From NCBI RefSeq assembly GCF_001194135.2, contig NC_068984.1:83890342-83954341 (forward strand): DNA of 64,000 nucleotides. The letters are read 5' to 3'. This stretch comes from Octopus bimaculoides (lineage: Eukaryota). Both the position numbers and the translations under genes were made by a program. This document shows positions 15,516-59,977 of the stretch, piece by piece. The notes beneath the pieces were generated by a model, which worked only from the letters and a program-made list of their open reading frames with translations, was not told where the DNA came from and searched no databases. Within the stretch, counting starts at the first letter, position 1. Every line of letters starts with the position of its first letter.

Positions 15516-15896
15516 TCATTCTGTCTTCATCCGCTTCATCGGGTAAACCTCACCTGCCCCGACGGTCGAAACAGGCATCACTACGATTGTCTTCTGACCG
15601 GCAGGAAGCTGTGTTGTGGCTGGAGTGGCTCGCAGACTAACTTGGTGAGTGTTACTGATTGGGTTTGTCTGGGCAGTGGTACTTATATTGCCGGTGTGTG
15701 ATATGGCAGGAGTGAGAACCATCACAGTAGTGGTGGCAGCATTTGTACTGGTTGTTACCGAGTCTACTGCATGACCATTTCCAGAACTGTTGATGACAGT
15801 ATTATGTGGAATGTAGGAGGGCTTTACACCAGCAGCAATTGAAACATTACAAGTATCCAAGGAATTTAGTGCTGCAGCATTACCAAGGTCAATGAA
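15516..15896 (-). CDS. Rfx: RFX coding exon 15 (last): [10 protein letters not shown]...[13 protein letters not shown]
   Basis: Acceptor (T)47GTTACAG, phase 0, stop TGA 15518-15516. Confidence 0.85.
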   Translation of the reverse strand, partial: FIDLGNAAALNSLDTCNVSIAAGVKPSYIPHNTVINSSGNGHAVDSVTTSTNAATTTVMVLTPAISHTGNISTTAQTNPISNTHQVSLRATPATTQLPAGQKTIVVMPVSTVGAGEVYPMKRMKTE

Positions 15897-15902
15897 CTGT
15901 AA

Positions 15903-15952
<50 letters not shown>

Positions 15953-36700: not shown

Positions 36701-39700
36701 TGGAGTACCTTTCTAATGTTTCACTAACTTACTTGTGGGTTAGATTTAAACAAAAAACACTCAGCAACTGACCCAACAAATACTTAATATACAAGACTCT
36801 CTCTCTCTCTCTCTAGCACATGCACAGTCATAAAGCTGAAGCCTGATTGATCAATATATTTAACTCATATCCATGAAAATAAAATGATTCTTGTTAAAAG
36901 AAAGGAATTCTGTCTTTTGGAATGATTTCTAAAAAAATTTTTAAAAGACACAATTCTGTATACAATCAAGATAAAGGACTCACCGTGTTCCTAAGCGTCT
37001 AGTTCTCAAGCCAATGAAGACAGAACGTATTAATTTGCCAAAGGAGGCTGGATTCATGGGGTCCAAGTTTTGTTCCTGACAGTGGCGCAAATAATGATTG
37101 TATAAAGTACTCCGAGGTAGACTAACACCTTCAGCAGTCTCATAGTTGTCTAGGAGCCACTGTACCTGCATAAGTACAATAGGTTTAATCTATTATCAAC
37201 GAACAGACAAATTGTAAAGATAATTGTATTTCACAAAAATAGCTATGATAAATATCACATATTTTACACAGTACAGATTATAGAGCAACCAACCAAACCT
37301 ATTCTCATACGAAAACTCAACTCTTTCCAAATCTACACTTAATGCAAACACATGCAAATTTGGAAAGTCTTTTTATCCTAATCCTGAAAATTTAATCACT
37401 TTGTAAATGACAGATATTGGAAATAGAGAAAATAACCTGTGGAGCAGAAGATAGGAGAAGCATGGAAAAAAAAAAAAAAATCCCAGAAAAATTTAGTATG
37501 ACATACCAAGAAATGTGCAGGTGCTCTTCCTAAGACATATAGGGAAAGTGAGAAAGCAGACCTTAGAAATCAAACGGAATACTAACAGCAAAACTTACTG
37601 TGGCTGGGGATGCTCTCGTAGTGTGACTGAGGGGAGCCCCTTCACCATCCATCGTACTACTCTGAATGACATAGGTGCCTGCATGTTGAGTTATGATTTG
37701 CCCTTGGATACTCTGGACATGGGCAATATTCGTGGCCATCTAGGAAAATAGAAAATGTCATTGATATGGATGATCAGTAATGAAAACTGAAGTTGTTTCC
37801 TTTTTCTTTATTAAAGAATGTTCATTTCTTAAAATGAAATACAATGAAAAACACAGAACATCAAAATGTAACTACAGAGGAAAACAAAATATCTTGGCAG
37901 ATATGGTTACTGAGTAACTTAAGTTGACAGGTTGTAGGAATTGTAGTGTGGTTAAGAAGTTTGTTTCATAACCACACAGATTGGAGTTTGATGCCTTTCA
38001 GCATCTTCTAATGCATTTGATATCAGTGCCTGTAAACAGAACACTTACTCTACTTGAATCACTCTATCATTGCTAGGTGTTTAGTATTTCTTTAAAAAAT
38101 CAATTTGTATTACTTGTATATCAACATGAAAATGTTTAGATGAAGTCTGAAAAGTCTTCATTAATCCTACTGGAAATGAGTTTTATAACAAAGAGAGGAA
38201 ATATTAATAGCTGATTTTCACACATGCACACAAATGACATCTTTATAAAATAATGAGGAAGCTAAACCCTCTCAAATGATGCCCTGGAGTCTTAAAAAAG
38301 AAAGGACATTTTGGATAATGTAATGAAATGCTTTTGATCTTTAGAATACTAAATCAAGTCTGACCTGGCATTAAACAATATTTTTCAGAATTTTGATCAA
38401 GAAATGCAGTGTTTGAGTGATAGTGAGCCTGAACTACTACTCATAAAACCCATACGTTTGAACTATGCTACAGGCATCTTGTGTTGTAACTAGAACCAAA
38501 TAACCACTTCCATTTCATTTGAGTAACTGGTTATTTTGGTACAGAGTGCTAATCTATATGAAAAGCCAGGAAAACTCTGTTTTCCTTATTATTTTTTTTT
38601 CGTGTTTTAAATATCACACTAATGACTATTTAATAGTCTAGAAGATTCACTAGTTAGTGAGTTCTTCATTTGAATGAAAACTGAGTAGAACAGTGTGAAA
38701 GAGAAAATACTGTGATATAATATAACAGTTAAAGGACTAGTCTTCATCTATATAATAACATACACACAAACGCTATAATGTCAAATAAACTTTCTTGTAG
38801 TATACTAGAGGTTAAGAAGTTAGCTTCTTAACCATGTGGTTTCAGGTTCAGCCACACTTTGTGGTACTTTGGGCAAATGTTTTCTACTATTAACCTCAGG
38901 ACAACTAAAGTTTTGTGAGTAGATTTGGCATACAGAAACTGAAAGAAGTCAGATGTGCATATATATATATATATATTATGTGATGATTGTAAACAAGTAG
39001 TACTATCATACAAGCTATATTACTAATTTCCAATCTTCTGAAAAAAAAAAAAGTCTGGCCAAGAGCAAAATATTACCTTGCTTTGGAAACAGATTGGAGG
39101 GGGTGGGGGTCATAGAAAATCTACTTCAACAAACTGCCTGACTAATGCAAGCATAGAAAAGTAGACATTAACTTTACCAAAACTATATGATAGAATACCA
39201 TGTGTCTCAATTAAATGAGAATGGTTTTATATAGAAATAATGTACCAATTTATTTTCTTTTGTACTTTACTGATATGTAATAAAAAAAAATCCAAACTGT
39301 TTAACCAATCTCCTCTCTCTGGGAATCAATTCCAATCTTTGGAAAATTGATATATTGTCTCATTCAAGAAAGGTAACCTCTTTTACTTCTCAAAAGCAAT
39401 GGAGATAGTCATGAACAACCACCTTCTCCAACATACTGAAACCGTCTTCTTTCTCAAAGATTATCAGGGACCTGATCTCCCATTGTTACTTACCAGTAAA
39501 TTTTTGTACTTAAAATAATGCTGTGCTTAATATTGACAAAGTATTCTCATGCATAAATTGCCTGCCTGTGGACTCTATCCATCTCTTGGATCACTTCTAT
39601 CAGATATCTCAAATTTTAACACAGCAAAAATTGTACCCCAAAGAATGGCTTTTCTCTTTAGAGCCGTATAATATTTTAGCTCTCAACAACTGGTCTTTTT

Positions 39701-42700
39701 GAAGCTGCAGTGTGACCTACAATAGAGAGCAGCTCTCAGATCTGGGGCAATGCTGCAGCTCCTCATATGAACTTTAGACAGCATCCCAGGAAAAAATCCA
39801 GACTGACTGGTTTCAAACTACTCATCAAGGCATTCCAATCTTTGACACATACCTTCTCTTCACTATCTTTTCTACATCTACTATAGTAGTCTCTGTTCTT
39901 CAATGTTGTGCCACTTCTAAACAAAAATTTGTTTGGTATGCATACTGTGTTGAGTCCCCAATCCTACACTATATTTCTAATTCTTTCCCCAGCAGAATAT
40001 CAGCCCTCCATGTGCTAGTTGTTCACATGCAGCTAAAGAACATCAACAACTGCAAGTGTATTGGTATCAAAAGACCTGACAAGGCCAGGGACACAACCCA
40101 TTTCTCCAAACCAAGCTAACAAGATAAATAAATAATAGTCTTGGACAAGGGCATCACTCCAAATTTCACCAGCTAGACAATCTATACTTCTCTCATTTCA
40201 TGATAAATAAATTAAATGCTGATTAAAAATACAGGTATAACAAAAATTACGAACATAAATAATTAAGCTTGAAGACAACACTAATAGTTGTCCAGGACAA
40301 TTAGGCCAGTGGTTAGAACACCAGACTCAGTAGTGGGTAAAACAATGATTGTAGGTTCAAAATGGTCTGAATAACAAACAGTACACACATATATAAGAGA
40401 CAGTATTTGCAATGAAGTATTAGTCGATTTGTATACTCTTACACAAAAGTAGAGAAGCTAAAACAAATAGTGACATTTGGACTACTTTTTGAAATGTAAC
40501 ACAATTTTATCTTACCTGGCTACCAGTAGTTTGATAGTATGTTCCACCAACAGAAGAGTACATAGCGTTAGGAGTATATTCTTGATAACCTGACCTGAAC
40601 ACATTAGAGAGAAAAATAGATATGAAATTATTGAATATTCACAGTTAAGATCAGATCAAGATGTAAGCTATCAAAAAGAAAGCATGAAAACAATGTATAA
40701 AATCTAAGATCAAATGCTAGATGAAAACACAGTGGGGAAACTGAAGGTAATCATGTAGGGCAGACACAAGCATATTTTACCTTCTTTTTTCTTATGCAGA
40801 CACAAGCATATTTTACTTTTTTTTCTTCTTGGATTTGGATGCTAGCTTAGGTGGGATAGTCTAAGCAAATCTGCATATTGTTTGAGTATTGTAATCCATA
40901 ACTTCAGGAGTCAATATTCAACCTTAGATGTATTTCTTACCTCAGAAATTGTTGACTGATGAAATGATTCCATCCACCTTTTGTAATAGGCAGTGAGTAT
41001 ACATATCCCAAAAGACTCTTGTGATCTCATGTGAGTCTAGAATTAAGTAGTTAAAATAACTATACAAGCTAATGAAGGAGTCTCTATATGATGACTTGGC
41101 CTGCTATGAATAGCAGTCAAATTCCTTTCAATCAGACCATCTCTTCTTAAAACAGAGCACATTAGATAATGTTATCAAGGTATCCTGCACATAAGAAAAA
41201 AGGCAGGATGGTCATAGCAGGAACGCATTTGATTGCAAGTCTACTCAAACTGGGCTGGTCTAGGGCTAAACAAAACAATTGTGGAATATTTAATACTACA
41301 TTAACTGAACAACAAAAGAAGAACATTGTAATTAGCAATGTAATATATAACAAGAAGCAGTCATTAGGACATACTGTAATAATTCAAACAGGCAGGCATT
41401 TATTTATGTTGCTTTTCTTAATCTCTTAGGATTGTTTGTTGCAATTGTGATGAATTCATATGTCCTCATGATCAGTTTCCAAAATTATATTATCTTTTAT
41501 CATTTGCTTAAGAGAGATAATATGCCCAAAGGTTTGCAGTTTTCATCAGTGTTATTTTGATTCAGGAGCTTGAGATAACTGGCTTGTTGAAACTGTATTA
41601 GCCTTCCCATTAAAAACTGAATTAGGAAGTAGTGGTAAGGGTATATTTCAATCATCAGCACTTTGAAACTAATGAGTTATTTTCTTTTTCAACAATAAAT
41701 CATCAACAGAGCTTAGAGCACTGAACAAAGGTGAATAATGAGAAGAGGTATATGAATGATAAAATGAGAAGTTGCTTTTCTTAATGTTAAATATACAATA
41801 CTGTTAAATACAGGAGTCGCCTATTTTAATCTTACAATATCAAGTGATAATGCCAAGGTTTTGTTGATTGTATAAGTTGGCCAGTTGTAATTTTGATGAA
41901 GTTAGAGTCAGTGAATACTTGACATTTTGAAGGCTTGTCAAATATGATAAGAAGTTTGTTTTCCAACCAAGTGGTTCCAGGTTCAGTCTCACTGTGTGGC
42001 ACCCTGGGTTAGTGTCTACTACTATAGCCCCGGGTCGACCAAAGTCTTGCAAATGGGGTCGATTTGTTTGACTAAAACCCTTCAAGGTGCTGCTCAAACA
42101 CAGTTGCAGTCCAATGAGTGAAACAGGTAAAATATGAAAACACATTATTAAATTTTGAATAAGGACAGTCAAACATGGAAGTAATTCAATTTGAAGAGTC
42201 AAAAATAGTGGTGATACAGATATTCTGAAACAACAGAATCAAATATTCTACAGACTTATAGATCTAGGTTTTTGAGATAGTTTGGAGTATGATTTAATAC
42301 TTTGCATTTTCATAATACCTTCATGAATCAAAAACAAATCCCAACAAATACCAATAAACCACCATTGATTTCACCCATCTGCAGTGCCCTAAAGAAATTT
42401 CAATTTAGGCATTTGATGAAATGATACTGTTGATAATACTATTGGGTTATGCAGAACCTTCTCTACAGATATTTAACATTTTTGACACACACAAAGAGTT
42501 TTAGCATCAACTAAAGTTAATGTCCCAAAAGCAATAACAAAAGACTATGGCCACCCATAAACTCATAATAAACTCTACCACCTCAACTGTAGGTAAAGCA
42601 TCCTGTAAAAGGCTTGTTAGCTTTATAAGAGAACTTCTCTAAAACCACTTCTACAAATGATATAGGATATTTACAATATTTGGATATTTGTCAAAGAGAA

Positions 42701-45161
42701 CTAACAAAGTCACGAACAGGTTGTCAAAGGCTGTTGTTTCAATGAATATAGTTTTACTTGTTTCAAACTAGATAATAAATTTATCAACGGCTTCAGCAGA
42801 ATTATTCCTTCAAATAAAAGAGTTGATTTTTATTGATGCTGAAATTGGTTATAGTATACGAAATGTAAAAATTTTGCAATCCATAATCTCAAGGAGTCAG
42901 TATCTAACCATAGACATATTTCCCCACTTCAGAAGTTATTGCTTAATGAAGCCATTTCATCCACCATTTATAAGAAATAGGAAGCAAGTATAATTCTGCT
43001 GTCAGTAATTAGCAAAATAATATAAGACAATTATAAAAATAACCAATACTACAATAGATCACAAGTGTCCTATGCACATATTTGTCTTTTTTAATAGCAA
43101 ACCAACCAACCAACTGTGAAGTATGGGATAGTGCTTGTAATCATCCAGGTAGATTTGACTAAATGTTACAAGCTATATCTTTCAATAAATAGTGCAGAAA
43201 TGGTGAAATATAAAAATAATGTTAAAGTGTATTAGTAACTTATGAAATATGCATAACTTGATAGACACATATACATGCATGCATGTGTGACTATGTATGC
43301 ATGCATGCATGTATGCAATAACCAAACAATGAGAAACATCAAATATTAATGTACAACTGAGAGGAGAAAGAATGGAAACATACAAAAATATCAAGGACAT
43401 ATAAAACTTTATCACTGTTTCCTCAACACACTCTTACTTCTTTCTCATACTTACCCCACTTCATCATTTGTAAACACCCTATCTTCTTCAACTCTATTGA
43501 TCACATTGTCTCTTTTGTCTTTGGTATACAAGGCAACCTCACTAGTGTTGGTGTTATAATAAAATGCACCTAACACACTCAGTAATGTGATTAACGTCTG
43601 AACAGAGAACATAGGGTCAAGAAACACATTAGTATTGTCTTGTCAGGACTTGATAACCTCTCTAGTATTGGTGCTATCATAAAATGCATGCAGAACACTT
43701 TGTAATGCCAAACATTCAACAGAACTTTAAAAAGATAAAGCTTGCAATACAAAACTGGCAACAGTCAACAAATTGAGGGCAGCCATTAAACAATAATGTA
43801 CACAAATACTGAACAAAATGTTTCTTGATAATTGCGATTCCATTACTTTGCGTTATCAGTAGTGCCTGCACCAGAATGGTCATCAGTTTGAAAATAGGTG
43901 TTCATAAAAAGAATGAAATTCTGCCTGTAGATTCTATTAAATTTTGAGAATGAAATATGTGTACATTCTTTTTTGCATACCCTGTGCATAAGCCAATGGT
44001 TGATTTGTTATGAAAGAACATTTTTCCAAGGTGCAACACAGTGGTTGCAAGGCAAGTCTCTCTGTTCCTGTTACTCATCCATACCTGTTTTTTCAAGAAA
44101 AGGATTTCTTATTTCACATGTCTTCGAAGGTGAAAATGAGTGGATATGTTGATAGAAGTGACAACAACAACACTACTCCTAGCTTGACACAAAGGCGCAC
44201 ACACACACACACACACATAAATATACATGATGGGATTCTTTCAGTTACTGTTACCAAATACTATAGTCAAAGGCTTTAGTTGGCCTGGAACTGTAGAAAA
44301 TGACCTTGCTCAAGGTGCTGTGCAGTGGGGCTAAATCTTGAAACACATGGTTAGAAAACGAACCTTTAACCATGCCTGCAATCTATTGATTGTACAATTA
44401 ACCTTATCTTTAGAATTTTTATTTACAGCTTGCTCTGTTCAATATATTCACTAATTACCTTCATATAACCTATTTCCCACAAATCTATATTTGCATGTGC
44501 TAAGACTGGATGAAGGATCTACTCTCTTACACATGCACGCGTATGCACACACACACATACTCTCTCAGTGGTTAACTACTTTTGATGTATTCAAATATAC
44601 TTAAGTATGTGTATACCTGAATACATCACAATTTTCACCTCATATTCTGCACACTGCCTTCCAATATCCATTTTAACTCTACTGATTATAATAGGAACCA
44701 ATAATAATTATTACTGGTTATAGAAAGGGATTTAGATGTAATGATTCTCAAATTGTTTTGCTAAGGATTTAGATGACACTATTAGAGACATGATGCATTT
44801 AGAAGAAATGTAGAGAAGCAGTTGCAAATTAATTGTACTGTGTGCTGTCACACACTTCAAATCTAAAATAAAACATGCTTTAAAGGTAGATCTTCACCTT
44901 CCTGAGCAATTTGATTACAATTAAATGTGAGATAGAAGTTTAAAGTAAAAGAAAGTCAAAGATTAATACAAGTATTTCACTAATTATTGCCCTGACCAAT
45001 CTACATACAGCATGGTACATTAAGTAGTATTAAAGAAAAATGAAGCTGAAACTTACACCATATCAAAGATATGAAAAGTCATATATCAAATGTGAAAAAA
45101 ATTGCATTATACACACACAAACAAATATGTTTGGGTTATAAGTACATCGTATGTATGTATA

Positions 45162-45202
<41 letters not shown>

Positions 45203-46268
45203 ATATATATATTCACAGAAAATATTGAACATTTACACAAAAGCAACCAAAGCTCTCTGGGTAGGCAGTTGAAGAGTTGTCCCTACAAGATTAGAAAGAG
45301 AAAGCTGGTTAGAAAAAGTTTCCATTAAATTAGCAGAAGGCTTCAGCTGATCTGTGATTTCTGAGACGCAGACCAATAGAGCCAAAATGACAGAGTTGCA
45401 ATATTATGGTAAATGTGCAGCAGTGCAGTTAGCAAGAGTAATAAAAAAATTTTTTTTAAATCATGGAAAAGCTTCATAAGGCTTTGTCAAAGTGCTCTAC
45501 AACTGATCTGGTTCAGGAAACACACAGCTGTTTTTGATTTTCTCTCTCTCCCCCTCTCTCTGTCACACTCAAGTAAAATGTAAGAATTGCTGATGAATTT
45601 ATAAAGTATTTTAAAAAATAAGTTCTGCCTCTAACAGCTTACAATTATGACTAGTGATAATTATACATTTACAAAAGCATCAGTAAATGACAATTACAAT
45701 TTTTCCCTTTTAGTTTTTCAAAATGTATTAACATTTATTGCCAGAAGTAGAACATGACTTTCACAGAGAGCACACAGCAGAGACTAACCATGTGCTACCA
45801 TGTATTTCATTTGGCCATTAAAAAATAATTTAAAACTCTAATCCAGAGTAAAACAAACAGAACTGATAACCAAAGTATCTAAACTTATAAAAATATAACG
45901 GATAATAGTTATACTAAAAAACTGAGGCCACAATGTTTAAAGTAATAATAATTTGATATAAAACTATAAGTAAATTAAAAAAAACAAAAAAAGAAAATAT
46001 TCCACAGGTTTTTCATCTTTTTGTTGTTTAAAGGAGATTAATATTCTCAAAATAAAAGTTAACTTCCAAACATCTTGTAGCCAATCAAATATTCTACAAT
46101 TGTGCATAGTTTTTATTCATTGTAATGAAATGCTTCTTATGTATCATAGATTAAAGAATTTAATGTAAATGATATAAGGCATTGTATATAACAATTTGAC
46201 AATATACAATATATCTAATGTAACATCTTATATATTCTCTAAGTCTAACCAAAATCTGATCCCCACAC

Positions 46269-46302
<34 letters not shown>

Positions 46303-49300
46303 TGCTCATTCTGTGTTTCTTTTATACATTTTGCATGTGAAGTAAGTTGAAGACAATGAAACAGAAAACATTTCCTAGTTTTATATTCAAACCTAAAAGT
46401 CTTTTTGCTTGGTGAAGAAGCTAACAGACCAGCATCATAAGTGTATATGAATATTGCTCACAGTATATTAAATAGGAAGGTATTGAGGAAAAATATATCA
46501 TTATCACTGATGAAGAAATGTACAATGGGGTTTCAAATATAATGCACTAGATTCATAGACCATTGTGCCATACTGAACTGATTATTTGATTATTTTCAAC
46601 AGTTTTCCACTAACTTATCAGTCTTCAACTCAGTATACTTCAGATTATATACTAGTTATTATTTTAAAATATTTTTCTCTGTGAATGAAATGCATATTTT
46701 AAGGAGTATTTATAAGAGTTTAAATCCACAACCATCTAAAATAGCTGAAGAATAAAAGCAAATTAAGTACAAGGAAGATTTAAAAAACGCTAATTTACCT
46801 CAAACTAAATTTAAATTATCAATAATTTAATTATGATAAATATATAGCTTAATATTAAAAAAATATTAAAATGGATTATATTGAAACATAAAACTCAACA
46901 AATGATCCTCACTAATAATGTTAAATTAGTACTAATTTCCTGTACTGACACAAAGCCACAGATTTTGAGTAAGAGTACAGGCAATTTAATTAACCTTCAT
47001 ATTTTATCAACATGAGAAAAATTAAAAGGTAGTGGTACTTAAATTCAGAACATAAAGACCAGTAACTAAATTTCCACAAGCATTTTTACTCTACTGATTT
47101 TATTATCCAAAGCCCTTGTTTAATTGATATTAACCATTTAATTTAAATGCTTATATCCACAAATAATACTAAAAAAAAAAAAAACAGAGCCTTCCAAAAT
47201 CCTGGTAACAATTTAACAACTGATATGTAAAGAAAAAACTAGTCAAACTAAAACCTGCATTTGAAATCTGGAGTTTTCTTAATTACCTACAATTAACAAA
47301 TTAATACACATAAAGCTTTCAACTTATAGTTTTAAACTAGCAGAAAATTTTGTATTGTGAAGAAAAAGATCTAACTTGACAAATTCTAACTGTAGAGTAA
47401 AACATAGTCAGGATGGCCTAAGAGCTGTTAAATAAAGGCATATGAAGTAAGTAATTATTTGCTTCATGCCCAAATTTAAGCCTAAGTAGCAAAAGCAAAT
47501 AGCAAATTACCAACAAAAGCAGGAGGAAAAAAACAAAACAAAACAACTAACAGATGCATGCAAGCCAAATAGTTTTAGCCAACAAATTCACATCTAAATT
47601 CATCAACAATTCAGTCGTACATTTGGCCATTGGCAGCTGAGTAGATAGCTTGGTCATTGGCTTCTACGTACTGGACATGTGCAGAATACACTGTTTGACC
47701 AGGTTGCTGGATGGATGCCTGTTCATGGACCTGCTCAGCAGTTGACTCGGGAACTGAGGCTGAAACAAACAAAAGATGGGGGAAAAACATTCTAACAAAG
47801 AGAACAGTGGAAATGTAATAATTTACTTCTATTTTAAATGTTGCAATAAGTTTCAAACTAGAATATTATTGAAAATGAAAGAAGAAAAAGAAAGGAATCT
47901 TGCATGGAAGGTTGGTTTAATATTTCTTTGAAAGAATTTTAGATATATGCTTCAAAGAAAAAAATTTTTAACAATGAAAATAAAGATTGATAAAAAAAAA
48001 GACAACTTATGGAATTGATATAGTAGAATAGGTGAAAAGTGGGAACATTTAAACAATTTTAACTGCTAAATGTCACTCAAAGCATGCTAAATAAGAAAAG
48101 ACCAGTGAACACATTCGTACTTGCTAAAACATTTCTATCCAAAAAAATTCGAGTAATTAGACCATTAGATTGGAAATGCATTAAATTTGTGGGTAAAAGA
48201 GTTGACCAACTCAAAAGAGGTTTGCTGTAGCAGAATACAAAAATTAAAAATTACTTAAAAGTTATTCTCATGACCTATAGCTCTCATTTCTCCACTATTT
48301 TACTATATAATGCTACCCAAGTAACAAGCGATGGCACTAGACTTGTCTGAAACCAGTCACTTACCATCATCTCTATCACTAAGATAGATGCCTATGAAAA
48401 ACAGATGCATTGAATTTGCATGTAATCAATACACTCTACTATGATCCTTTTCTGTACTACCAATCACCCATCATCGCTCATTTCAATAACTACCTATCAT
48501 GTAATCTTTCTTCCAAACTAGCAGTAGCTAATTTGTTATTATGGAAGAGAGATACAATGATATACTTCTATCATTCATTCTTTCTCCCATATATTCCCTC
48601 ATGCAAATGGAGATGCTGTAAGGTCTCTCTCAACTATGTGGGGGCAAAAGACAGCCATGTTGGTGCTACAATAAAATACACCCACCACACGCTGCAGAGT
48701 GGATAGAAAATAACAAGTATTGAGAGGACCCTTTAGCTTATCTGAAGGCATGACAACCACTCTAGTGTTGCTATCACACCCAGTACATTCTGTAAAATGG
48801 TTGGTGTTAGACAGGGCATCCAACTGTAGAAACCCTGTTTAACATAGGACTCATGATAAAGAAAGTCTTTTGTCTTATATCAGAGGACAGTAGCTCCAAA
48901 TAAGGACATGTGGTGTGATGACTCATTTAACTAGCATAGAAAGCAGATGTATAATGACGATAATTTTCTTACAAAAGAATTCAATTGCTTAAAATGTTAG
49001 GTACACACACACGCATAAATAATATCTTAACTACATTTTAGAGCCATTCTGGCCATCTAATAGCGCAAAAAGCCTGCTACATTCACTTTCCATTTATTTC
49101 AAAAAGTAAAAATAACAATTTTTTCTTTGTGTTTTAGAAGGCTCTAGCCTTGCCCCTTTCATGAAGTAATTGCTTCAGTTTCAGCACACAATCTCAGAGC
49201 AGGTCACTTGCCAAACTAGTACAATCTGAACTGTATATATATATATATATATATNNNNNNNNNNNNNNNNNNNNNNNNNNNNNNNNNNNNNNNNNNNNNN

Positions 49301-52300
49301 NNNNNNNNNNNNNNNNNNNNNNNNNNNNNNNNNNNNNNNNNNNNNNNNNNNNNNNNNNNNNNNNNNNNNNNNNNNNNNNNNNNNNNNNNNNNNNNNNNNN
49401 NNNNNNNNNNNNNNNNNNNNTATATATATACATATATGTACACATACACACACAATATACCAACTATAGTCAGTAAGAAAGTAATAAAAACATTACAATT
49501 CTAAGTTCAAACCAACCCTGTCAATGACAGTGGCAGTATTATCTACAGATACCTGACATTCAGAAATTCCCTGCTCACTCTACATATTCCACAACAAACT
49601 TGTAAACCACAAGGCTATCCAGATATGAGGTAACAGCAATCCATGCAAATATTCAAAAATCATCCTGTATTATCATACAGAGAGATGCTAAAAATACTGA
49701 ATGACAGTGAGAAGGAAAGCAGAAAGAGTAACAGGCAGAATTTTAATTTGAGAAGTTCTAGTTTCCAGCCATTTGGCCGTGGCCATGCCAAGGTACCAAA
49801 CTAAAAAAAAAAAGTCAGTAGCAAAATTACAAGTCAGGTATTTAAAAATATATAGTCAGAGAAGGAAGGGAAATACACATGACCTTTGTTAGATTATAAG
49901 GTTGATGTGGAGGTTGAACTTAGGTGTGCTGATGTCTGTAGGAAAAAAAACCTGAGCAAGGACTGAGTTACAGTGGACTACAGTTTGGGAAAGGAATAAT
50001 TGGGAAAAGTGTCAAGTAGCTTCTATAGATCAGGTGGCTTTTCAGTGAAGGTGGTAGACAGTCTGCTAGTTCAGAGAAGCAAAAAAAGCCATTACAGCAG
50101 CCTCAGTCAGCTAGATGGCCTCTTACTGATCTTTGTGTGTGTAGCAGCAGTGCTGTTCAGATATATAAATAATACTTTAATGTGAGTTGCACTTGTGCTT
50201 TGTAGACTATCAGTAACTGATTAGGAGATTAAGATTTAAGTATTTTGGGGTATTGATAAGAAAGTCTAGTCTTAAGGCTGATTCAGTTGATTACACTCCT
50301 CATTCAAAATGTTCAGCCTTGTATCAATAACTAACACAATTGATCTCAGTAGAATTTAAGTGCAAGACAAAATACTGCAAGGTTTTTAATTCAGTATTCT
50401 ACAATTTCTATACAGAAGTTGATAAAATAAACTACACTCTAACCACAACAAAAACTGGTATTCATACACAGTCAAAAGAAATTATTACTAATATTATTAT
50501 ATTAGCACTGTAATAGAAATAATTGTCTGATAGATATTTGTGACAAGCAACAGAATGGTGAATGTTGTTATATCCACAGTGTGGTAGGATTTGTGACAGC
50601 ACTAGAATGGTGTGTGTGTATGTGTGTCATTTGCACACACCCATCACCAGTGATGAGTGTGTAAATGAGTTAGACTGATGAGTGTTGTGATTTGTGAATG
50701 CAGTATTCTTTTTAGACATATGTGAGAAGCACAGTCCCAACTGTTTTACATAATATAATTAAGCTCAACTAGAACAACTTTTTAAACATCTGGAAGTGTT
50801 AAGACAATGAAAATAAACAGAAATGCATTAGAAAATAGTGATCTATATTAGAAGACAAACATTTCAAAGTTAGTGCATTTCAGTGCATCTGTTAGTTTGC
50901 CTAGTAAACTATTTCAGCAAGCCCTGGTAGATAGTGGTTAATAAGAACAAAACAATAAATTAATAAAGAAATTCACAAATTGTTGAAAGATAAAAATCAT
51001 GTAAGACTCAAGAACAAACAAGGCTTTAAAATTTCAAGACAATTTACTATTCTACATTAATAAGATGCTAGATGAAGCAAAATATTTTTGTCGAAACCTA
51101 ACACAACCTACCTGAATGATTTTATGTCAGTACTAGCAGAGTCATAAGCAGGTTGTGTGATACTAAACTCTTTAAGGGTATCTTTGTAACTTTGTTGCAA
51201 ATATCAATCTGATTTATCTTTCTTATTAGGTTGATTTTCTGGAGGAAAGCACAATTCAATTACTATTTTTATGCTCAAATGCTTTACGCCTTAAGAAATT
51301 ACACAAATCAATAACTAGATAAGCTGTCAGACTCCTAGTTATTGGGTCCCGTGTATGTCTCCTGTTGAAAACAATGTATTATTTCCCTAATCTTGAATTC
51401 AAATTTACACCAAATTGCTGCCACCACCACCAGTAACATTTGACTTACAATACCTGATAAGCAGTACAATGAGACAATGGTGGAATGTATCTATGATATT
51501 GGTAGGTCAAAATAGTCATGAAAATAGTTGATTATGATAGTCAACACATATGAAATGACAAGAATTAAGAAGATATTATGCTGAGATGACAAATTGTAGT
51601 TGTCCAGCTTATTATTGCACACAAAAAATAAACATTAAAATGATTTATGATGATTGGAATCAGTTTTGTTGCAAGGCTTAGGTTTAAGCTTATGAAGAAT
51701 CAATATCCAATGGGAGGACACCAATGATATGTTTGAGGTCTCGATGGGTCTCAGACTTGACACACATACTGAAAATTTCTACCAAGGATCTCAAAGCAAA
51801 TCAAACCTATTGCTTCAAAAATTCATGCATAAAATCGAAATCTTTAAAGACTATTCCATATAGGCCAACTTGGAAAGGTGGATAAATTTCAAAATGTTCA
51901 AACAATGGTACTGAGAGGGAAAATTTACGACCACATATGTAAGACAAAATTTATTATTAACTTACTGGCAACTATATAAGAATGCCCTGTGTGTGCAGGT
52001 TGAAGAATGGTGGTAGTGGCTTGTGACACTTGAACTTTTTGAATTGGTCCAGCATTCACAGCACTAGTCTGAGGTTGTTGTGTCAGCTGTTGAACAGGCG
52101 CTTGTTGTTGTGGAGCTTGTACTTGGTTTGGTTGAGGCTGCTGCTGTTGCTGTTGCTGTTGTTGTTGTTGTTGCTGCTGCTGCTGAAGTTGTTGTTGCTG
52201 TTGTTGCTGCTGCTGAACAACTTGTGCCTGAGTGACCACAGGTGACTTTGCAGTATTCTTTGTTTAAAAAGATTTAAAAAAAATGTTGATGTAAGTTATA

Positions 52301-53575: not shown

Positions 53576-56203
53576 CATGTGTATAGTGGTGTAAAATAAT
53601 GTGCAGTTAGTTGTCTCTTTATATCAAAAGATAACTTATCCATGATGATAAGCAGAGATAGTAAATTAATTTCCATTGAATAAAGAGCCTTTAAAGCTGT
53701 CCTAAAAAGTCAATGACCAAAATCAATGAAAGTGTACATATATCATCATCATTTTTACAACACCTTCTTTTGTTCTGACAACTGAATGTTCTTGTCACCA
53801 CACAATGTACTATTTCTCTTATTCCTTCAGACAATGAAGGACTAGGGGAAATATATCAACATTGTCTTATGTCTGCTTTTTATGCTGGCTTGGACTGAAT
53901 GGGTCAATATTGTCAGAGTCAGTATATATTCAGAGATACTGTTCACCAAGACTGTACTTCTGAATATGGACCACATCTCATGCGTTTTATTTTTGGCTTT
54001 CGCCTCTATACCTAAATCCTCTTTTTAGCACCAACCACTTTGCAGAGTGTAGTGGGTGTAATTTTTATGGTACCAGTAGTAGACAGGTTGCCATGTCCTT
54101 GACAAGACTAAAAGATCCTCTCAACCTTACATTTTACAGAGTATACTGGGTGCATTTTCATATGGCACCAGCGCTAGAGAGCCTCAAAGATTAGTGCTCT
54201 CAACCCCACACCTCTACTCACTTACTAACTAACCACTTAATAGAGTAAGAGGCATAGGTAATATAAGCATGACTCATAGAAATGAGTAATAAGAACAATG
54301 TGTTACACAAGGGGGTACCCAAAAGAAACCGGAATTTTGCAACATTATTTTATTCACTTAGTTTTACATGCTTACACATTTATTGTCTTCAAAGTATTCT
54401 CCATTTGAAGCAATGCATCAGTTCAGATGCATTTTCCACTGTTCGAAGCAGTACTAAAACTCTTGTGAAGTGATGCCTTTTAATGCCTCCATCATTTTTA
54501 TCTTCACCTCTTTCGCATCTGCAAATTCCGTAGCACCAGCTTTCATCACCAGTGATGACCTTCGAAATAAGGTCAGGATCAACTTCCAACTGTTCCTTCA
54601 GTTCATGACAGGCATTCAGTCATGACTACTTTTGATCTTCTATGAGCAAGTGAGGCACAAATCTTGCTGCAACTCTTTTCATTCACAATTCCTCACTCAG
54701 AATTCATTGGCAGGAGCTCCAGGACACACCAGTGATATCAACAAGTTTGTTAATTGTTCAGTGACGGTCCTCCAAGATCAGTTTATGAATTTTCATGCTT
54801 TCATTTGTCCAGGTGGTCGATGATTGCCCTGAATGAAATTGGTCTTCAAGCTGCAAGTGACTATTCCTAAAGCATGGAAACCACGCAGCATCCTTGTAAG
54901 CTGTTTGAAACATGACCACTATTTTCCCCAGCAGAAAACAGAATTTCATGGAAGCACACTGTTCTTTCATTTCAGCCATTGCAAAAATTGATAAACAGGG
55001 AAGAAGCACAGTAAAACAAAGATGTACCATGTGGCAGTACGAATTCAGATGACGCCGCCAGTTGGCAGACTGATGCCTGAGGGTTGCATTGAGTGGCTTC
55101 TAGCAGCAGAAGCCTGAACTACAAAGGGTTGTCCCACAGAGAAAGTTTCCAATTACTTTTGGGTACCCCCTTGCGGAGAGGTGAATGTCTGAGATATGTA
55201 CATACATTCAAGACAAATGTGACCAAAAGAAAAGAGCTGTGATAGAAGGCAACATGGCCCAGGAGACAGAGTGATGAAAAAGGAAGAGCTAGAATGTGTG
55301 AAAGAAAGAGAATAACAGTATGATGAGAGTGAGTGAAGAAGGAGATGATGGCAGCCCAGGAGGGAGGATGTAGGCAGTATGCTGGACACAATAGGTCCAG
55401 TATAGTCACTTAACAGAGACCCCTAGATGGGCAGGAGAAGTCAAGTGGTGAGGTTGGTGGAAGGGGAATAGGAAGTAGAGGGGTCCTCTACTAATGAATG
55501 GGGAATGACAGAGAATTGAGTGATAGAGATAAGAGTGACAGAAAATGAGAGGGTATCACATCACAGATGAGGCAGCAATAGTAGACTTGGTTGCAATATC
55601 CACACACCCATACTCCCAAGAATAAACATGCATGTGTATGATGATCATCATTTAACCCTTTCATTACCATATTTTTGTTGAAATACACTGCCTTTTTTTT
55701 CAATTAATTTTGAAAATAATAATAATAAAAAAATTATTAAAATAACTCTGACATTATTCAGCTGGGGTTTGGAACATAAATTAACATGAAATTTTAATGT
55801 AGGTTACTTTAAAATGGGAAGTTTGTATCATAGGACCAAGGGCGGTTTCAGGTGGGTTGGTATCTAAAGGGTTAATGGCTATTTTCTATACTGGCATGGG
55901 CTGAACAGTTTGACAGGAACTGATGAGCCAGAGGACTGTTGAGCTCCAGTCTGTTTTGACATGATTTCTACAGCTAGATGCGCTTCCTATTGCCAACCAC
56001 TTTACAGAACGTAGTACTGATTGTTATTTTTATGGCACCAGCACTAGTGAGGTCAACAAGCAACTTACAAGAAAAAATCTCTCAACTGAATGGGGTTTAG
56101 TATTGAAGGATGTAAATGTACGAGAGACAGGAACAGGTGTCTTGCTGAAGAAGACACACATAGATTCCCCAGTGAGAGTGTGTTTGTGTGTGTGTGAGAG
56201 AGG

Positions 56204-56248
<45 letters not shown>

Positions 56249-58197
56249 TAGAAGAACAGAAAGGGTGGCTAGCTAAGTTTGTGAGAGTATGACAGATGAT
56301 TAGAGATGGAGATTGAGGTGGATGCATGGTTGGTGGTGAATATCATTTTGGGGGAAGTGAAAGAATATGTATATATATATATATATATAAATAAAAAGAA
56401 GGAAATGAATCTCCTATACAGAACAAAAGTTAGCACTCGTTAAATAGAGCTAAATAGAGTTATATATATATAATCATCATTTTACTACACATGCATGGGT
56501 CAGATGGAATTCACTGAAGTAATTTTTCTGTGGCTATATGCCCTTTCTGTTGCCAACCATCACTTTTTCCTATGTATGTTTCTCAAGGAAAGATTGCAAA
56601 TAAATAACAGCACTTGTAATGATAGTCATACTTGTTTACAATTATCATGTGATATCAAGACAAAGAGATGTGTGTGTGCATGCACACACATACACTCTCC
56701 TAAGTTTTTGGTTGGCCTGATGCTATAGTTGAAGACACTGGCTTAAGGTGCTGCACAGTGGAACTTAGCTTCAAACCACATGGTTGGGAAGCAAGCCTCT
56801 CAACCACACAGCCATACCTGTTCTTATGCATATAAATACATATATGTAAAATAAATTCAGTCTACAATGCTTTTTGACTTCTGATTCACCATGCTTGCAC
56901 ATTTGGAAGGTCTTTAACACTGTGAATTACCATTCAACACAATCCCGTTATCTTTTTCATCTCCTTCCAAAAGTTCTATTTAATTTGAGTACACATCACT
57001 TTTAATACAGCTACAATCTTCTATGTGCATCACATGCCCATTTCAGCATAGCCTCCTCTCTCACACACTACATCTGATTCCTCTTATATTCAGTTTTTCT
57101 CTCAGCTCATTAAGTTTCTGCTGTTTGTGCACACTAACATTACACCCAACAAAGCATGCTTGCTTCATTTCTTTCTAGTTTTTGCAAATCCTCAACATCC
57201 ACAATGCACATCTTGCCACCATGCAGTACTACACTTTATAAATGTACATTAATCTGCCCTTCACTCTGAGGAGAAAGTCTTTGTTAAGAGGATTAATAGC
57301 TTCTCAAACTCTTTCCAATTCATTTTAACTCTGACTACTATACTTTGAGAACATCCACTCACACTAACTAGATCACCTTAGGTAGCACAAGTTTTCAACT
57401 TCTTTTACTTCTTATACATGTATAATGTATATACATATAATGTTCATTATCTTCACATTTATCTGTCTGTGTTTTATCCTTTATATATTTTCATTACTTT
57501 GTATTACTGCCACTTTATTTACATACTTGGATAAACCCGTGCTTCTGTATATTACAAACATCAGTGCATTGTTTCAATTGATTTACATATCATATATATG
57601 TATGTACATATAAAGTTCATATTAGTACATAGGTTTGCATAAGTCTATAAGTTTATATATGTTTACAATAATGTAACATTCAGGTATGGTTTCTTACATT
57701 GAGACAAGGCCCCAAATTTCAGGAATGGACATAGCAGATTGGACAATTAACCTCTGTATGACATTGATACTTATTTTATTGACTGAAAGTAGGGAAGAAA
57801 TCTGCTCCAGTGGGATTTAAACTCAGAATGGGAAGGGGTGAAACTAAAAACAAGGCATTGCATCTGACTAATCTACTATTGCAACCTTTCACCACTGTGA
57901 CATAATCATTGCCACCACCCAAAATAAATGATAAGTTATGACAAATAATAGTCTAAGCAGAAATTAAACCAAGGCACATTTGGAATAATCAGAGTTGAAT
58001 TGAGAAAGATGAAATTGAGAGTGAGAAAAAGAAAAGCAAGATAAGCTGAATAAAGTCAATATAAAAATAAATAATGTGAACATCATTAGATACTTAGGTT
58101 AGTACATAATCTGAAACTGAACTCAATCCATACCTACCTGTGGCACATTCGCAGGATTCATTGCCTGAAGGTCATTCACGAAAGTTTGTGTAGCCAT
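15516..58197 (-). CDS. Rfx: RFX1/2/3-type regulatory factor X transcription factor (daf-19/Rfx orthologue), 15 coding exons, 831 aa: join of complement(58138-58197, 51966-52257, 47621-47759, 40516-40594, 37599-37739, 36984-37165, 34790-34906, 33738-33972, 30906-31000, 29845-29999, 27310-27407, 24732-24881, 21566-21774, 17063-17225, 15516-15896)
   Basis: All 14 introns are GT-AG with compatible phases; total 2496 nt. [32 protein letters not shown]...[21 protein letters not shown] and dimerisation segments [23 protein letters not shown] and [37 protein letters not shown] are near-identical to vertebrate RFX1-3 as I recall them. The N-terminus [11 protein letters not shown] resembles RFX1 MATQAYTELQ. 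Confidence 0.95.
15904..15950 (-). repeat. 47-nt poly(T) tract (sense strand) forming the polypyrimidine tract of the last exon
   Basis: A47 on the + strand next to the acceptor. Confidence 0.95.
17063..17225 (-). CDS. Rfx: RFX coding exon 14: [51 protein letters not shown](VRQ)
   Basis: Acceptor tttgtag, phase 2. Donor CAG/GTAACT at 17063, or AAA/GTCAGA at 17072. Confidence 0.93.
17392..17770 (-). mobile_element. Near full-length tRNA-derived SINE (family A)
   Basis: Head GGCATGGCTGTGTGATAAG...GGTTCAGTCCCACT with A/B-box-like motifs; body shared with copies at 6085, 18134, 29145, 33470, 38808, 41945, 44225 and 56690. Confidence 0.8.
18134..18290 (+). mobile_element. SINE family A, 5' part, inverted relative to the 17392-17770 copy
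   Basis: gctgtggggtaataag...ccacatggtcc...accttgggcaagtg...gtgagtggatctggtagacggaaac. Confidence 0.75.
19161..19321 (+). mobile_element. Well-preserved (GAT)7-tailed SINE 3' segment (family B)
   Basis: gagtggttggtgttaggaagggcatccagctgtagaaac...acgttaaac(gat)7 with CpGs retained; related copies at 9065, 26565, 53280 and 55640. Confidence 0.75.
19946..20114. mobile_element. Short element with a perfect 16-bp inverted repeat and internal CCCTAA motifs (MITE-like)
   Basis: TTAAATACAGAGGTCC (19946-19961) and GGACCTCTGTATTTAA (20099-20114); ccctaaccctaacc at ~20037-20050. Confidence 0.55.
20546..20989. other. Assembly gap (444 N) in RFX intron 13
   Basis: N run. Confidence 1.
21566..21774 (-). 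CDS. Rfx: RFX coding exon 13: [26 protein letters not shown]...[14 protein letters not shown]
   Basis: Acceptor gcttgtag, donor AG/GTACCT; phase 0 to 2. Confidence 0.95.
22012..22188. mobile_element. TTAA-flanked MITE (piggyBac-like), family P1
   Basis: TTAAcactttagcattca ... tgaatgctaaagggTTAA terminal inverted repeats. Confidence 0.75.
24501..24605. mobile_element. GC-rich truncated TTAA-CCCTTT element end
   Basis: Starts TTAACCCTTTCGTTAC like the P2 MITEs; 13-bp direct repeat ACTAACCCGGCCG at 24515 and 24559; second terminus not found. Confidence 0.5.
24732..24881 (-). CDS. Rfx: RFX coding exon 12: [50 protein letters not shown]
   Basis: Acceptor cttgcag, donor CAG/GTAAGT; 150 nt, phase 0-0. 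Confidence 0.96.
26565..26860 (-). mobile_element. SINE family B copy
   Basis: catcatcatcatttaacatctgccttccatgctggg...tacagctggata...caccaaccactttacag. Confidence 0.65.
27310..27407 (-). CDS. Rfx: RFX coding exon 11: [32 protein letters not shown] (not in the ORF track)
   Basis: Acceptor cttctttcag, donor AAG/GTATGA; phase 1 to 0; matches the [20 protein letters not shown] motif. Confidence 0.94.
29145..29770 (-). mobile_element. SINE family A copy interrupted by a foldback MITE
   Basis: SINE head is split at ...ggaagcaa | gcttcttaccacacagccacgcctg by the 29441-29743 insert. Confidence 0.75.
29441..29743. mobile_element. Foldback MITE with ~110-bp inverted arms
   Basis: 29448-29557 is the reverse complement (with mismatches) of 29591-29699; extra partial terminus gcagcaaactttcc at ~29724-29737. 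Confidence 0.8.
29845..29999 (-). CDS. Rfx: RFX coding exon 10: [51 protein letters not shown] (not in the ORF track)
   Basis: Acceptor ttttcattacacag, donor A/GTAAGT; phase 2 to 1; [17 protein letters not shown] motif. Confidence 0.95.
30906..31000 (-). CDS. Rfx: RFX coding exon 9: [31 protein letters not shown] (not in the ORF track)
   Basis: Acceptor ttttatttcag, donor AG/GTAGCT; phase 0 to 2; B-domain VVNLQF..IE.LW..FWR. Confidence 0.94.
31462..31686. mobile_element. TTAA-flanked MITE (piggyBac-like), family P1
   Basis: TTAAccctttagtattc ... gaatgccaaagggTTAA; interior similar to 22012-22188. Confidence 0.8.
33738..33972 (-). CDS. Rfx: RFX coding exon 8: [10 protein letters not shown]...[17 protein letters not shown]...IYREHAE
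   Basis: Acceptor ttttcccag, donor GAG/GTAAAT; phase 2 to 0; QHHQQFL and YREH motifs. Confidence 0.94.
34790..34906 (-). CDS. Rfx: RFX coding exon 7 (end of DBD): [38 protein letters not shown] (not in the ORF track)
   Basis: Acceptor tttctttaaag, donor AA/GTGAGT; phase 2-2; completes [12 protein letters not shown]. Confidence 0.96.
36984..37165 (-). CDS. Rfx: RFX coding exon 6 (winged-helix DBD): [60 protein letters not shown]
   Basis: Acceptor cttatgcag, donor CG/GTGAGT; phase 0 to 2. Confidence 0.98.
37599..37739 (-). CDS. Rfx: RFX coding exon 5: [47 protein letters not shown] (not in the ORF track)
   Basis: Acceptor ctattttcctag, donor ACA/GTAAGT; 141 nt, phase 0-0; HTTRASPAT motif preceding the DBD as in RFX1/3. 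Confidence 0.93.
38808..38950 (+). mobile_element. SINE family A, 5' part
   Basis: ggttaagaagttagc...accatgtggtttcaggttcagcc...tttgggcaaatg...gtgagtagatttgg. Confidence 0.65.
39400..40050 (+). mobile_element. Highly degraded CR1/L2-group LINE RT fragment
   Basis: Remnant peptides [14 protein letters not shown] (~39535-39585) and SSQIWGNAA (~39728-39755). Confidence 0.5.
40516..40594 (-). CDS. Rfx: RFX coding exon 4: [26 protein letters not shown] (not in the ORF track)
   Basis: Acceptor gtgttcag, donor CAG/GTAAGA; phase 2 to 0 fits both neighbours; resembles the RFX3 Y-rich activation segment. Confidence 0.85.
41945..42130 (+). mobile_element. SINE family A copy
   Basis: gataagaagtttg...ggttccaggttcagtctcactgtgtggcaccctggg...ctactatagccccgggtcgacc. 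Confidence 0.7.
45057..45082 (-). CDS. Rfx: Candidate alternative first coding exon of RFX (MTFHIFDM-V), in frame with exon 4
   Basis: ATG...ATG GT/GTAAGT phase-2 donor; in-frame TGA two codons upstream; inverted CCAAT at 45373-45377. Confidence 0.4.
47621..47759 (-). CDS. Rfx: RFX coding exon 3: [45 protein letters not shown]
   Basis: Acceptor ttttgtttgtttcag, donor AT/GTACGA; phase 1 to 2; VQYVE motif of RFX activation domains. Confidence 0.88.
48365..48391 (-). CDS. Rfx: Candidate 27-nt cassette microexon of RFX (adds [10 protein letters not shown] in place of T)
   Basis: tgcatctgtttttcatag / GCATCTATCTTAGTGATAGAGATGATG / gtaagt; symmetric phase 1, stop-free in the required frame only. 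Confidence 0.55.
49255..49420. other. Assembly gap (166 N) within a (TA)n microsatellite, RFX intron 2
   Basis: N run. Confidence 1.
51966..52257 (-). CDS. Rfx: RFX coding exon 2 (Gln-rich): [15 protein letters not shown]9-L-Q16-PQPNQ...GHSYIVA
   Basis: Acceptor tttttaaacaaag, donor A/GTAAGT; phase 0 to 1. Confidence 0.85.
52138..52215 (-). repeat. Coding CAG/CAA repeat: Q9-L-Q16
   Basis: Counted from the sequence. Confidence 0.95.
52630..52940 (+). mobile_element. Tc1-like transposon 3' remnant
   Basis: [49 protein letters not shown] resembles the C-terminal helix of Tc1-family transposases; possible TIR end ...catcctgcata. Confidence 0.6.
54306..55175 (-). mobile_element. Internally deleted mariner transposon with both TIRs (~870 bp)
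   Basis: TIRs cacaagggggtacccaaaag and cttttgggtacccccttgcg. Transposase remnants [19 protein letters not shown] (from 54979), [12 protein letters not shown] (first catalytic Asp at 54547-54545), then directly FADAKEVK...[10 protein letters not shown]. Confidence 0.88.
55652..55875. mobile_element. TTAA-flanked MITE (family P2) inserted in the tail of a family-B SINE
   Basis: TTAAccctttcattacc ... ggtatctaaagggTTAA; the flanks rejoin as catcatttaa-tggctattttctatactggcatggg (SINE B). Confidence 0.8.
56195..56243. repeat. (GA)n microsatellite
   Basis: Direct reading. Confidence 0.95.
56690..56820 (-). mobile_element. SINE family A, 5' part
   Basis: ...gaagacactggcttaaggtgctgcacagtggaac...accacatggttgggaagcaagc...accacacagccatacctg. 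Confidence 0.7.
58138..58197 (-). CDS. Rfx: RFX coding exon 1: [20 protein letters not shown] (exon spans 58138-58210; not in the ORF track)
   Basis: Acceptor ctttcccttctttag, donor CAG/GTAGGT; phase 0; similar to the RFX1 N-terminus. Confidence 0.85.
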
Positions 58198-59977
58198 TGG
58201 ACATTCAGTCCTAAAGAAGGGAAAGTAAATATAAATAATAAATCACTTAGTTGTTAATTATATTTCAGGTTCCACAAAGGTCGGTCAGTTGGAGCAAAGG
58301 AAACCAAAGAAAACAACAAAGTTCTGAATAAAGATTGTATATAGATCATGAATAACCCATTCTCTTATGATATTCCATTAGCATTAAGACCTCAGTCAGC
58401 CACTCTAAGTAATTATAATGAGAAAAATAAACTTTTGTTCAACCTTTATTTAAATTTCCAACCAACTTGATTTTAAGTCTTTCTTGAGTTTAGTTTTCAC
58501 CAGGTTACCTTTCCTATATTAGCTTAGGTGGGGGTGTCCTTTGATGGAACAAATGTTTTTGCCACAAAATCAGACATGTAAGACAAGCAAAGCAAAATTA
58601 TGAACACTGTTCAGGGATACAATATAATGGTCGCACTTAGTATCATCAGAACTCTTGACTATGTAGTTGGTGTTCCAGCCATCATTATGCCATATCTTTT
58701 AAATGATTTTTCTTTCTTTGTAATATTTGTTGAGACACACTTTTAGCAATGACTCTAAGCTGTTGTTTAGTTCTAGGTCAAGACCAATTGGGCTGACCTA
58801 TGATCAAAGGCATTCCAGCTGTGATCAATCCCTCTTGAGGGATGGATGGGAGTGAACTAGTTTACATTATCTGATGTGCGTCTTTTCTTTTGACTGCGAT
58901 TTCTAGCAAATCAAGTGAGCACATACAGCTTCTTTGTTGGCTTGACTCCAACATGTAAAGATATAAAAAAAGCAACTGTGATGGCATGGTATTTTAAGAA
59001 GAAGAAAAGGAAAAAAAAAACATGAGGGAAAGAGCCAAAGGACAGTTCATTAATTAGGTACTTCGGTGCATTAGAATCTTCTCAGTAGACTGAATCAGAG
59101 ACTAGATTTTAATTTTCAGTAAGAATTGTTTTGCTTTATCATTTTGCCAGGCATTTGATGTGCTTACATCATTGACAATTTTCTCTTCATTTTACACAAA
59201 ACTAGGGTACCTGTGTTCTTCTCCACTCATATAGCCGACTGTTAATACTGAGACATTTCTGATTACAGCCACGACAACACCCATTCTGCTACTACATACT
59301 GAAGTAAAATTGTCATTTTATATATTTATGGTAACTATATGAATGGACCTTTTCTTTTTTAAGATGGCAGGGCATGATCTAAAGATCTGTTTGCTATTTC
59401 TTGTAAGCCAAGTGATGATCTAAAAGTTCCTTTGGTGGCTTAAATGGCATATGTGAATGTGTGTGAGTGTGTATACACACACTGGTTTAAATAAAAAGGA
59501 GAAAAAGTATTCAATACCACAGTAGAGTAGAGTAGTTTATTGAGATTGGTCCAGCAGCCTGTTACTCAGCTCTGGAGTTTCTCCGATATATAGCCAGTTC
59601 TCTAGACAAGTTGTTTAACCCCAGGTTAGCCACTGATCTATTTATTAATAAATATATCTGCATATGTGTGTGAGTGGTTTAAATATATATATATATATAT
59701 CTGAGGTTGTTGCTGGCAGTGAAGAAGTCCAGCTTCTCCAATTTATTCCACATGTACCTGAAGAGCATAAAACAGTACATTATATACATATACTCATATA
59801 CACAAGCCCACACTGACATAAATACAGCAATTAACATTTCTTTCTGTATGCATACACATTTGCTCAGCATTTCCATGAAAAGATTCAAAATGTCAAATTT
59901 TTTCACTTCTTATAGTCTATAGCAATGACAGATAGTGGTAAACCCTATCTTCTCTTTGATTCCAGAGAAGAACCAAC

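Follow-up and report, generated by a model that had tools for sequence, protein, structure and literature searches.

A candidate internal first exon in intron 3 of an octopus RFX gene is very probably a chance pseudo-exon

A short open frame on the minus strand of a 64,000-nucleotide stretch of Octopus bimaculoides DNA (here called the window; contig NC_068984.1) begins with an ATG, ends in GT/GTAAGT at 45051-45082, and is very probably a chance pseudo-exon in intron 3 of an RFX gene. A sequence-only reading had proposed that an internal promoter and first exon at 45057-45560 produce a short RFX isoform without the polyglutamine (polyQ) region. That proposal is not upheld, given that the pattern occurs at chance level, the promoter motifs are at background and no such protein is annotated. 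The probability that the 45057 exon is a genuine functional first exon is very small. Short octopus RFX products without the polyQ region are already in the databases, and novelty would require an internal promoter to be demonstrated.

The minus strand of the window encodes an RFX1/2/3-type transcription factor, with coding exons that run from 58197 down to 15516 (Table 1). A probe sequence served only to locate the exons, whose boundaries were then set from the sequence and splice sites of the window itself; the exon numbering given earlier agrees with the rebuilt gene model. The start-codon exon matches the N-termini of mollusc RFX proteins, MATQT[FY]VTDLQAMNP. Because this exon has its own acceptor, a 5'UTR exon and the main promoter should lie further upstream. 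The N-terminal part of exon 2 resembles chiton RFX. An activation role for this polyQ or Q-rich exon is putative, and PF04589 is not on record for the mollusc homologues. Exon 5 can end at either of two donors, at 37599 (ACA/GTAAGT) or at 37587 (GCT/GTTAGT), the latter of which adds VSFA. The translation of exon 6 matches the DNA-binding domain (DBD) of human RFX1 (PDB 1DP7, E 7.7e-32), and PF02257 is on record for all homologues. The B, C and dimerisation regions follow C-terminal to the DBD: exons 4-15 of the window are identical to XP_014772406.1, and the 90%-identity cluster representative of that protein, which differs by one residue, carries PF25340 (BCD_RFX). The best match to a full-length query, at 99% identity, is 'transcription factor RFX3-like isoform X5 [Octopus sinensis]', itself a short isoform, and mollusc RFX2/RFX3-like proteins are 65-71% identical to octopus RFX over 98% of the length. 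The 13 real donors of the gene score between 3.8 and 13.0 bits with a generic donor matrix.

Table 1. Exons of the RFX gene and other features discussed in the text, in window coordinates.
Feature	Position	Strand	Remarks
Long-isoform start-codon exon	58138..58210	-	ATG 58197; own acceptor present
PolyQ exon (exon 2)	51966..52257	-	Acceptor 52257 (adds 10 residues) or 52227
Exon 3	47621..47759	-	Weak donor AAT/GTACGA, 3.8 bits
69-nt extension past exon 3	47552..47620	-	TGA 47613-47611, ATG 47559-47557, CAT, CT, donor /GTTAGT
GA-rich run (gagagagggggagagagaga)	45541..45560	-	Sequence inspection
ATTGG (inverted CCAAT)	45373..45377	-	Sequence inspection
(TGTATGTATATG)n / (TA)21 / (TGTA)n microsatellite	45152..45212	.	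Tandem Repeats Finder; 70-130 nt upstream of candidate ATG
Candidate first coding exon, judged a chance pseudo-exon	45057..45082	-	ATG 45082, phase-2 end
GTAAGT donor-like hexamer	45051..45056	-	Context GGT/GTAAGT; 6.46 bits, generic donor matrix
Rival chance candidate, same intron	43455..43612	-	ATG 43612, 158 nt open frame, phase 2, GGG/GTAAGT
Exon 4	40516..40594	-	Acceptor ...tgtgttcag/GTCAGG; entry point of all annotated short isoforms, 40594
Exon 5	37587..37739	-	In-frame ATG at its beginning; two donors 12 nt apart
Exon 6	36984..37165	-	RFX winged-helix DNA-binding domain
Exons 7-14	between 34906 and 17063	-	Exon table
Last coding exon	15516..15896	-	Stop TGA

The flagged sequence (TGA TAT ATG ... 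GAT ATG GT/GTAAGT) is found exactly at 45088-45051 of the minus strand, with the TGA at 45088-45086, the first ATG at 45082-45080, a second in-frame ATG at 45061-45059 and the end of the exon at 45057. The arithmetic of the proposed transcript is also sound. A phase-2 join from 45057 to exon 4 at 40594 combines GT with the first G of exon 4 to give MTFHIFDMV/SGYQEY, and the rebuilt exon model returns a product of the same length, 676 aa. The first ATG (tgatatATGa) is in a weak context, with T at -3, and the second (tttgatATGg) is in a good Kozak context. The GTAAGT is perfect from +1 to +6. Nothing similar to 44600-46000 was found elsewhere in the window.

How often such a pattern arises by chance was assessed by scoring every GT in intron 3, which is 7,026 nt long, with a donor weight matrix. 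The matrix is a generic metazoan one based on the general donor consensus, and its scores are used for ranking and nothing else. Thirteen GT sites score at least as high as the candidate's 6.46 bits, and six of these are preceded by an in-frame ATG with an open frame and end in the phase 2 that exon 4 needs. When the intron was shuffled 300 times with its dinucleotide content preserved, equal or better candidates numbered 2.3 on average, and 91% of the shuffles contained at least one; the observed six against the expected 2.3 is uninformative on any single candidate. The GTAAGT hexamer occurs 21 times on the minus strand of the window, twice within intron 3. Given that six candidates lie within the intron and that most shuffles produce one, the pattern is expected by chance, and the 45057 exon is therefore not supported.

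One of the other sites in the intron, at 43455..43612, has an open frame of 52 codons and a donor (GGG/GTAAGT) of 10.8 bits, above that of the candidate; it serves only to illustrate that the flagged site is not unique.

Intronic pseudo-exons and cryptic 5' splice sites of long metazoan introns likewise combine an ATG, an open frame and a consensus-like donor, and show no further mark of being used. The flagged feature shows no difference from this class, in which it is filed, and the number of such sites found fits the composition of the intron. The whole of 45051-45560 would then be ordinary intron 3 sequence, for which neither a promoter nor a first exon would be needed. It is also conceivable, but quite unlikely, that 45057 is used as a rare cryptic donor, or downstream of a noise-level start such as one at the TA-rich microsatellite, without yielding a functional protein. 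GTAAGT is a competent U1 site, and low-level cryptic splicing is common in long introns, which fits rare use of 45057; an internal exon ending at the site is opposed by the roughly 120 nt upstream, which contain no AG acceptor for it.

The two promoter marks proposed upstream, an ATTGG (the inverted CCAAT box) and a GA run, are both present where they had been placed. The minus strand of the window, however, contains 73 ATTGG and 57 CCAAT motifs, or about 2 per kb, and the window contains 11 GA/TC runs of at least five units and 14 (TA) runs of at least six. Near 45 kb the CpG o/e is 0.07-0.17, versus a window median of 0.16, and the GC content is 27-34%, values that are those of the intron background; the window as a whole is about 33% GC and strongly CpG-depleted, with N gaps and many microsatellites. 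By motif counts and CpG o/e in the window, no promoter motif or CpG signal at 45.1-45.6 kb rises above the local background. No X-box and no Rfam family was found in the window. All three features (ATTGG, GA run and TA microsatellite) are thus very probably background of an AT-rich, microsatellite-rich, CpG-depleted intron. The region had also been described as free of recognisable transposons. Repeats make up about 66% of an octopus genome in curated annotation (PMC13282606), and with repeats at about two-thirds of the genome such a description cannot be judged from one window.

The layout of the region bears on the promoter as well. The microsatellite occupies the position required for a core promoter, and four upstream ATGs (45325, 45232, 45147 and 45107) lie between the ATTGG and the candidate ATG, such that transcription from a point downstream of the ATTGG would include the microsatellite and as many as four of these ATGs ahead of the proposed start. 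A different function for the ATTGG and GA-run region, as an intronic enhancer or GAGA-type element of the RFX gene that acts independently of any exon, is extremely unlikely. In some animals GA repeats can be binding sites for GAGA-type factors, which fits an enhancer, and the stretch has no match elsewhere in the window, but with 11 GA/TC runs in the window the GA run is not distinctive.

Short forms of octopus RFX are already annotated, with 5' segments other than the 45057 exon. A cluster of short Octopus isoforms at 90% identity has four members from three species. Isoform X5 of O. bimaculoides (XP_014772406.1) and isoform X5 of O. sinensis (XP_036358189.1), each of 674 aa, start with MHL/SGYQEY; an older O. 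bimaculoides model (XP_014772405.1, 675 aa) starts with MQWR/SGYQEY; and the O. vulgaris protein (CAI9721133.1, 657 aa) starts at the Met of exon 4 (MYSSVGG). The exons of the window reproduce XP_014772406.1 exactly (674/674) and CAI9721133.1 exactly (657/657), and the O. sinensis protein differs from them at one residue. The O. sinensis and O. bimaculoides models, which carry XP_ accessions, come from separate RefSeq annotations, and the O. vulgaris gene models were built from Iso-Seq and RNA-seq (PMC10700109). Given that CAI9721133.1 begins at the exon-4 Met, its upstream exon should have no in-frame ATG.

The annotated short isoforms resemble the proposed 676-aa product in that they are without exons 1-3, use the acceptor at 40594, retain the DBD together with the B, C and dimerisation regions, and are 657-675 aa long. 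They differ from it in starting with MHL, MQWR or the exon-4 Met, and in using the exon 5 donor that adds 12 nt (VSFA). The N-terminus MTFHIFDMV is absent from all four members of the cluster. Exact look-ups of the 676-aa product, and of a 680-aa variant made with the alternative exon-5 donor, in a collection of 15 billion proteins did not find either, and no long isoform was returned. None of eight reconstructions of the long Octopus isoform is in the protein collection, and a search of representative proteins for that isoform gave nothing closer than 66% identity. Because the collection returned no long isoform and is thus incomplete for this gene, the absence of the 676- or 680-aa isoform is weak evidence. 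The matches to a query with the N-terminal exon 3/4/5 junctions were limited to exon-5-like fragments of other animals and included no Octopus transcript contig, and the literature search yielded no work on the isoforms of octopus RFX.

The suggestion of a long/short split of the gene therefore survives in part: short products without the polyQ region that enter at exon 4 are annotated, but they carry other 5' segments and not the 45057 exon. The long/short idea for octopus RFX has annotation-level support, from existing annotation only. The specific version of it, in which an internal promoter at about 45.1-45.6 kb, active only in certain tissues, gives rise to a first exon that ends at 45057 and yields an RFX protein of 669 or 676 aa without the Q-rich N-terminus, similar to daf-19c of Caenorhabditis elegans, is very unlikely. 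The frame of the 45057>40594 join is correct, though six sites in the intron pass the same test; the donor falls inside the range of the gene's real donors, and the second ATG is in a good context. The annotation includes short isoforms that enter at exon 4, and daf-19 is a precedent for an RFX gene that is organised like this. Against this stand the ATG and phase-2 donor pattern, which is expected by chance, a proposed promoter without motif or CpG signal over background, a proposed 5'UTR that would hold a microsatellite and upstream ATGs, and the absence of the 45057 isoform from the annotated Octopus proteins in the collection.

The origin of one annotated short start can be traced in the window. 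Two sites on the minus strand of the window carry ATGCATCT with a GT directly after it. One of them lies in the extension past exon 3, where splicing 47559-47552 to exons 4-15 yields a protein identical to XP_014772406.1 at every residue, and thus the MHL start of isoform X5. This is the only one of the alternative 5' segments located in the window, and it lies 2.5 kb upstream of the flagged site. Its donor at 47552, GTTAGT, has a hexamer identical to that of the alternative exon 5 donor in the annotation. A second ATGCATCTGT site, at 48410-48401, was considered as the MHL exon and rejected, since its donor (GTTTTT) scores -7 bits. The MQWR segment was not found in the window even at 3 mismatches; it may lie beyond the upstream end of the window, within an N gap or in an older assembly.

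Isoform X5 most likely results from a weak second 5' splice site 69 nt past the weak donor of exon 3, in transcripts from the usual promoter. Read-through from exon 3 would meet the TGA of the extension, which would break the long open reading frame, and an annotation pipeline would then place the coding sequence in the next open reading frame of good length. Such an X5 mRNA would probably be a target of NMD, or would need reinitiation after an open reading frame of about 170 codons. Given that the MHL segment lies only 69 nt beyond the exon 3 donor, an internal promoter is not required for it, and alternative splicing is modestly favoured over an internal start in intron 2 or exon 3. That an internal promoter of any kind is behind the annotated short forms is a possibility of some weight but a minority one.

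Diversity of N-terminal isoforms is known in RFX genes. The earlier account of the long and short isoforms of daf-19 is accurate: daf-19a/b are long and belong to non-ciliated neurons, daf-19c is short and ciliogenic, and daf-19m is another short form; the DBD and the dimerisation domain are present in every one of them (10.1101/2021.02.03.429678). The C. elegans gene is like octopus RFX in that one gene gives proteins that differ at the N-terminus and have a common DBD and dimerisation domain. The daf-19 isoforms, however, are defined by genetics, reporters and isoform-specific rescue, whereas the octopus short forms are known here from annotation and the flagged exon from sequence alone. Human RFX1-3 have several transcription start sites (TSSs), and in a FANTOM5 survey the encoded protein is unchanged for most of the alternative RFX TSSs, while a testis-specific transcript of RFX1 encodes a shortened N-terminus (PMC5838959). 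The human TSSs were defined by CAGE and RT-PCR, the octopus candidate by inspection of the sequence.

Among the best 120 matches of the full-length search, no other mollusc short isoform was found. A bivalve protein of 631 aa that starts at the equivalent of the exon-4 Met was considered as a conserved short isoform and rejected, given that its contig is 5'-truncated and has GQT upstream, as in the long form. If octopus RFX did run a daf-19-like programme, with one or several internal promoters within introns 2-3, it is still extremely unlikely that the 45057 exon belongs to it as a seldom used first exon, confined to tissues such as testis or ciliated sensory cells and overlooked in the RNA sets behind the annotation.

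For the reading of octopus gene structure, a caution follows: long, AT-rich introns are expected to give an ATG, an open frame and a phase-compatible GTAAGT by chance several times in each intron. In the daf-19-type scheme, the long isoform has the Q-rich N-terminus and the short isoform does the ciliogenic work. If the 45057 exon were true, this division of labour would extend to a lophotrochozoan with a large nervous system, which would be of moderate interest to researchers on RFX factors and cilia. The question worth asking about the annotated short forms, which begin with MHL, MQWR or the exon-4 Met, is whether an internal promoter gives rise to them or whether they reflect alternative splicing that is unproductive.

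Isoform X5, the annotated short, polyQ-less product of the RFX1/2/3-type gene (XP_014772406.1), uses a donor that is 69 nt beyond the weak donor of exon 3. Read-through from exon 3 meets a stop at 47613-47611, ahead of the isoform X5 ATG at 47559. Instead of arising from an internal promoter, this annotated "short isoform" may reflect use of an alternative 5' splice site that yields an unproductive transcript. For any 5'-variant transcript with no in-frame ATG further upstream, translation would begin at the Met codon of exon 4 or at that of exon 5, and the O. vulgaris model CAI9721133.1 does start at such an internal Met. The exon 4 Met is followed by different residues in octopus RFX (MYSS) than in other molluscs and annelids (MYTP).

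At the 5' end of the gene, an acceptor precedes the exon with the start codon, and this exon also contains an out-of-frame upstream ATG, 10 nt 5' of the main ATG. The 5'UTR exon or exons and the main promoter of the RFX gene were not found in the window, and may be located past its upper end. At the opposite end of the gene, the polypyrimidine tract at the last-exon acceptor is unusually long.

Features of the RFX gene and of the surrounding sequence (window positions)
Feature	Position	Strand	Detail
5' edge of start-codon exon	58198-58210	-	own acceptor ctttag/GACTGA
"MHL" start of isoform X5	47546-47620	-	ATG 47559, donor 47552/GTTAGT
In-frame Met codon inside exon 4	40561-40563	-	MYSS
In-frame Met codon, first of exon 5	37737-37739	-	MATNIAH
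Exon 5 tandem-donor pair	37587-37599	-	+12 nt = VSFA
Exon 14 tandem-donor pair	17063-17072	-	9-nt difference = VRQ
T run, ~50 nt	~15897-15950	-	immediately 5' of last-exon acceptor ttgttacag/TTC
Transposase-like ORF fragments	~54300-55100	-	intron 1; a 10-residue peptide (not shown) and MKFCFLLGK
~90-nt repeat pair	41961-42049 and 29347-29436		inverted orientation, 81% identity
GC-rich stretch (0.55)	1-800		holds reverse-transcriptase-like ORF fragment
Reverse-transcriptase-like ORF fragment	443-781	-	weak PDB matches, MMLV RT fingers/palm, E about 6e-4

The reverse-transcriptase-like fragment, which lies downstream of the RFX gene, appears to be the remnant of a retroelement. The fragments in intron 1, which we take to resemble mariner/Tc1-type transposase, fall inside a region of raised GC (52-56 kb) and gave no match by PDB sequence search. 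The ~90-nt repeat, to which an ORF piece at 38828-39013 is related, lies in introns of the RFX gene and probably represents an interspersed element of SINE-like type. CpG depletion is extreme throughout the window, the median o/e of 500-nt windows being 0.16, with higher values of 0.67-0.88 in a few intronic and exonic windows, such as 19.3-20.0, 24.3-25.0 and 29.5-30.0 kb. Neither an Rfam family nor an RFX X-box motif was found anywhere in the window.

Two pairs of tandem donors in the RFX gene each alter the protein by a few residues. The exon 5 insertion is present in three annotated models, those with the MHL or MQWR start. Because both exon 14 forms, MGEVRQFIDL and MGEFIDL, are found across molluscs, the choice of donor in this exon looks to be of ancient origin.
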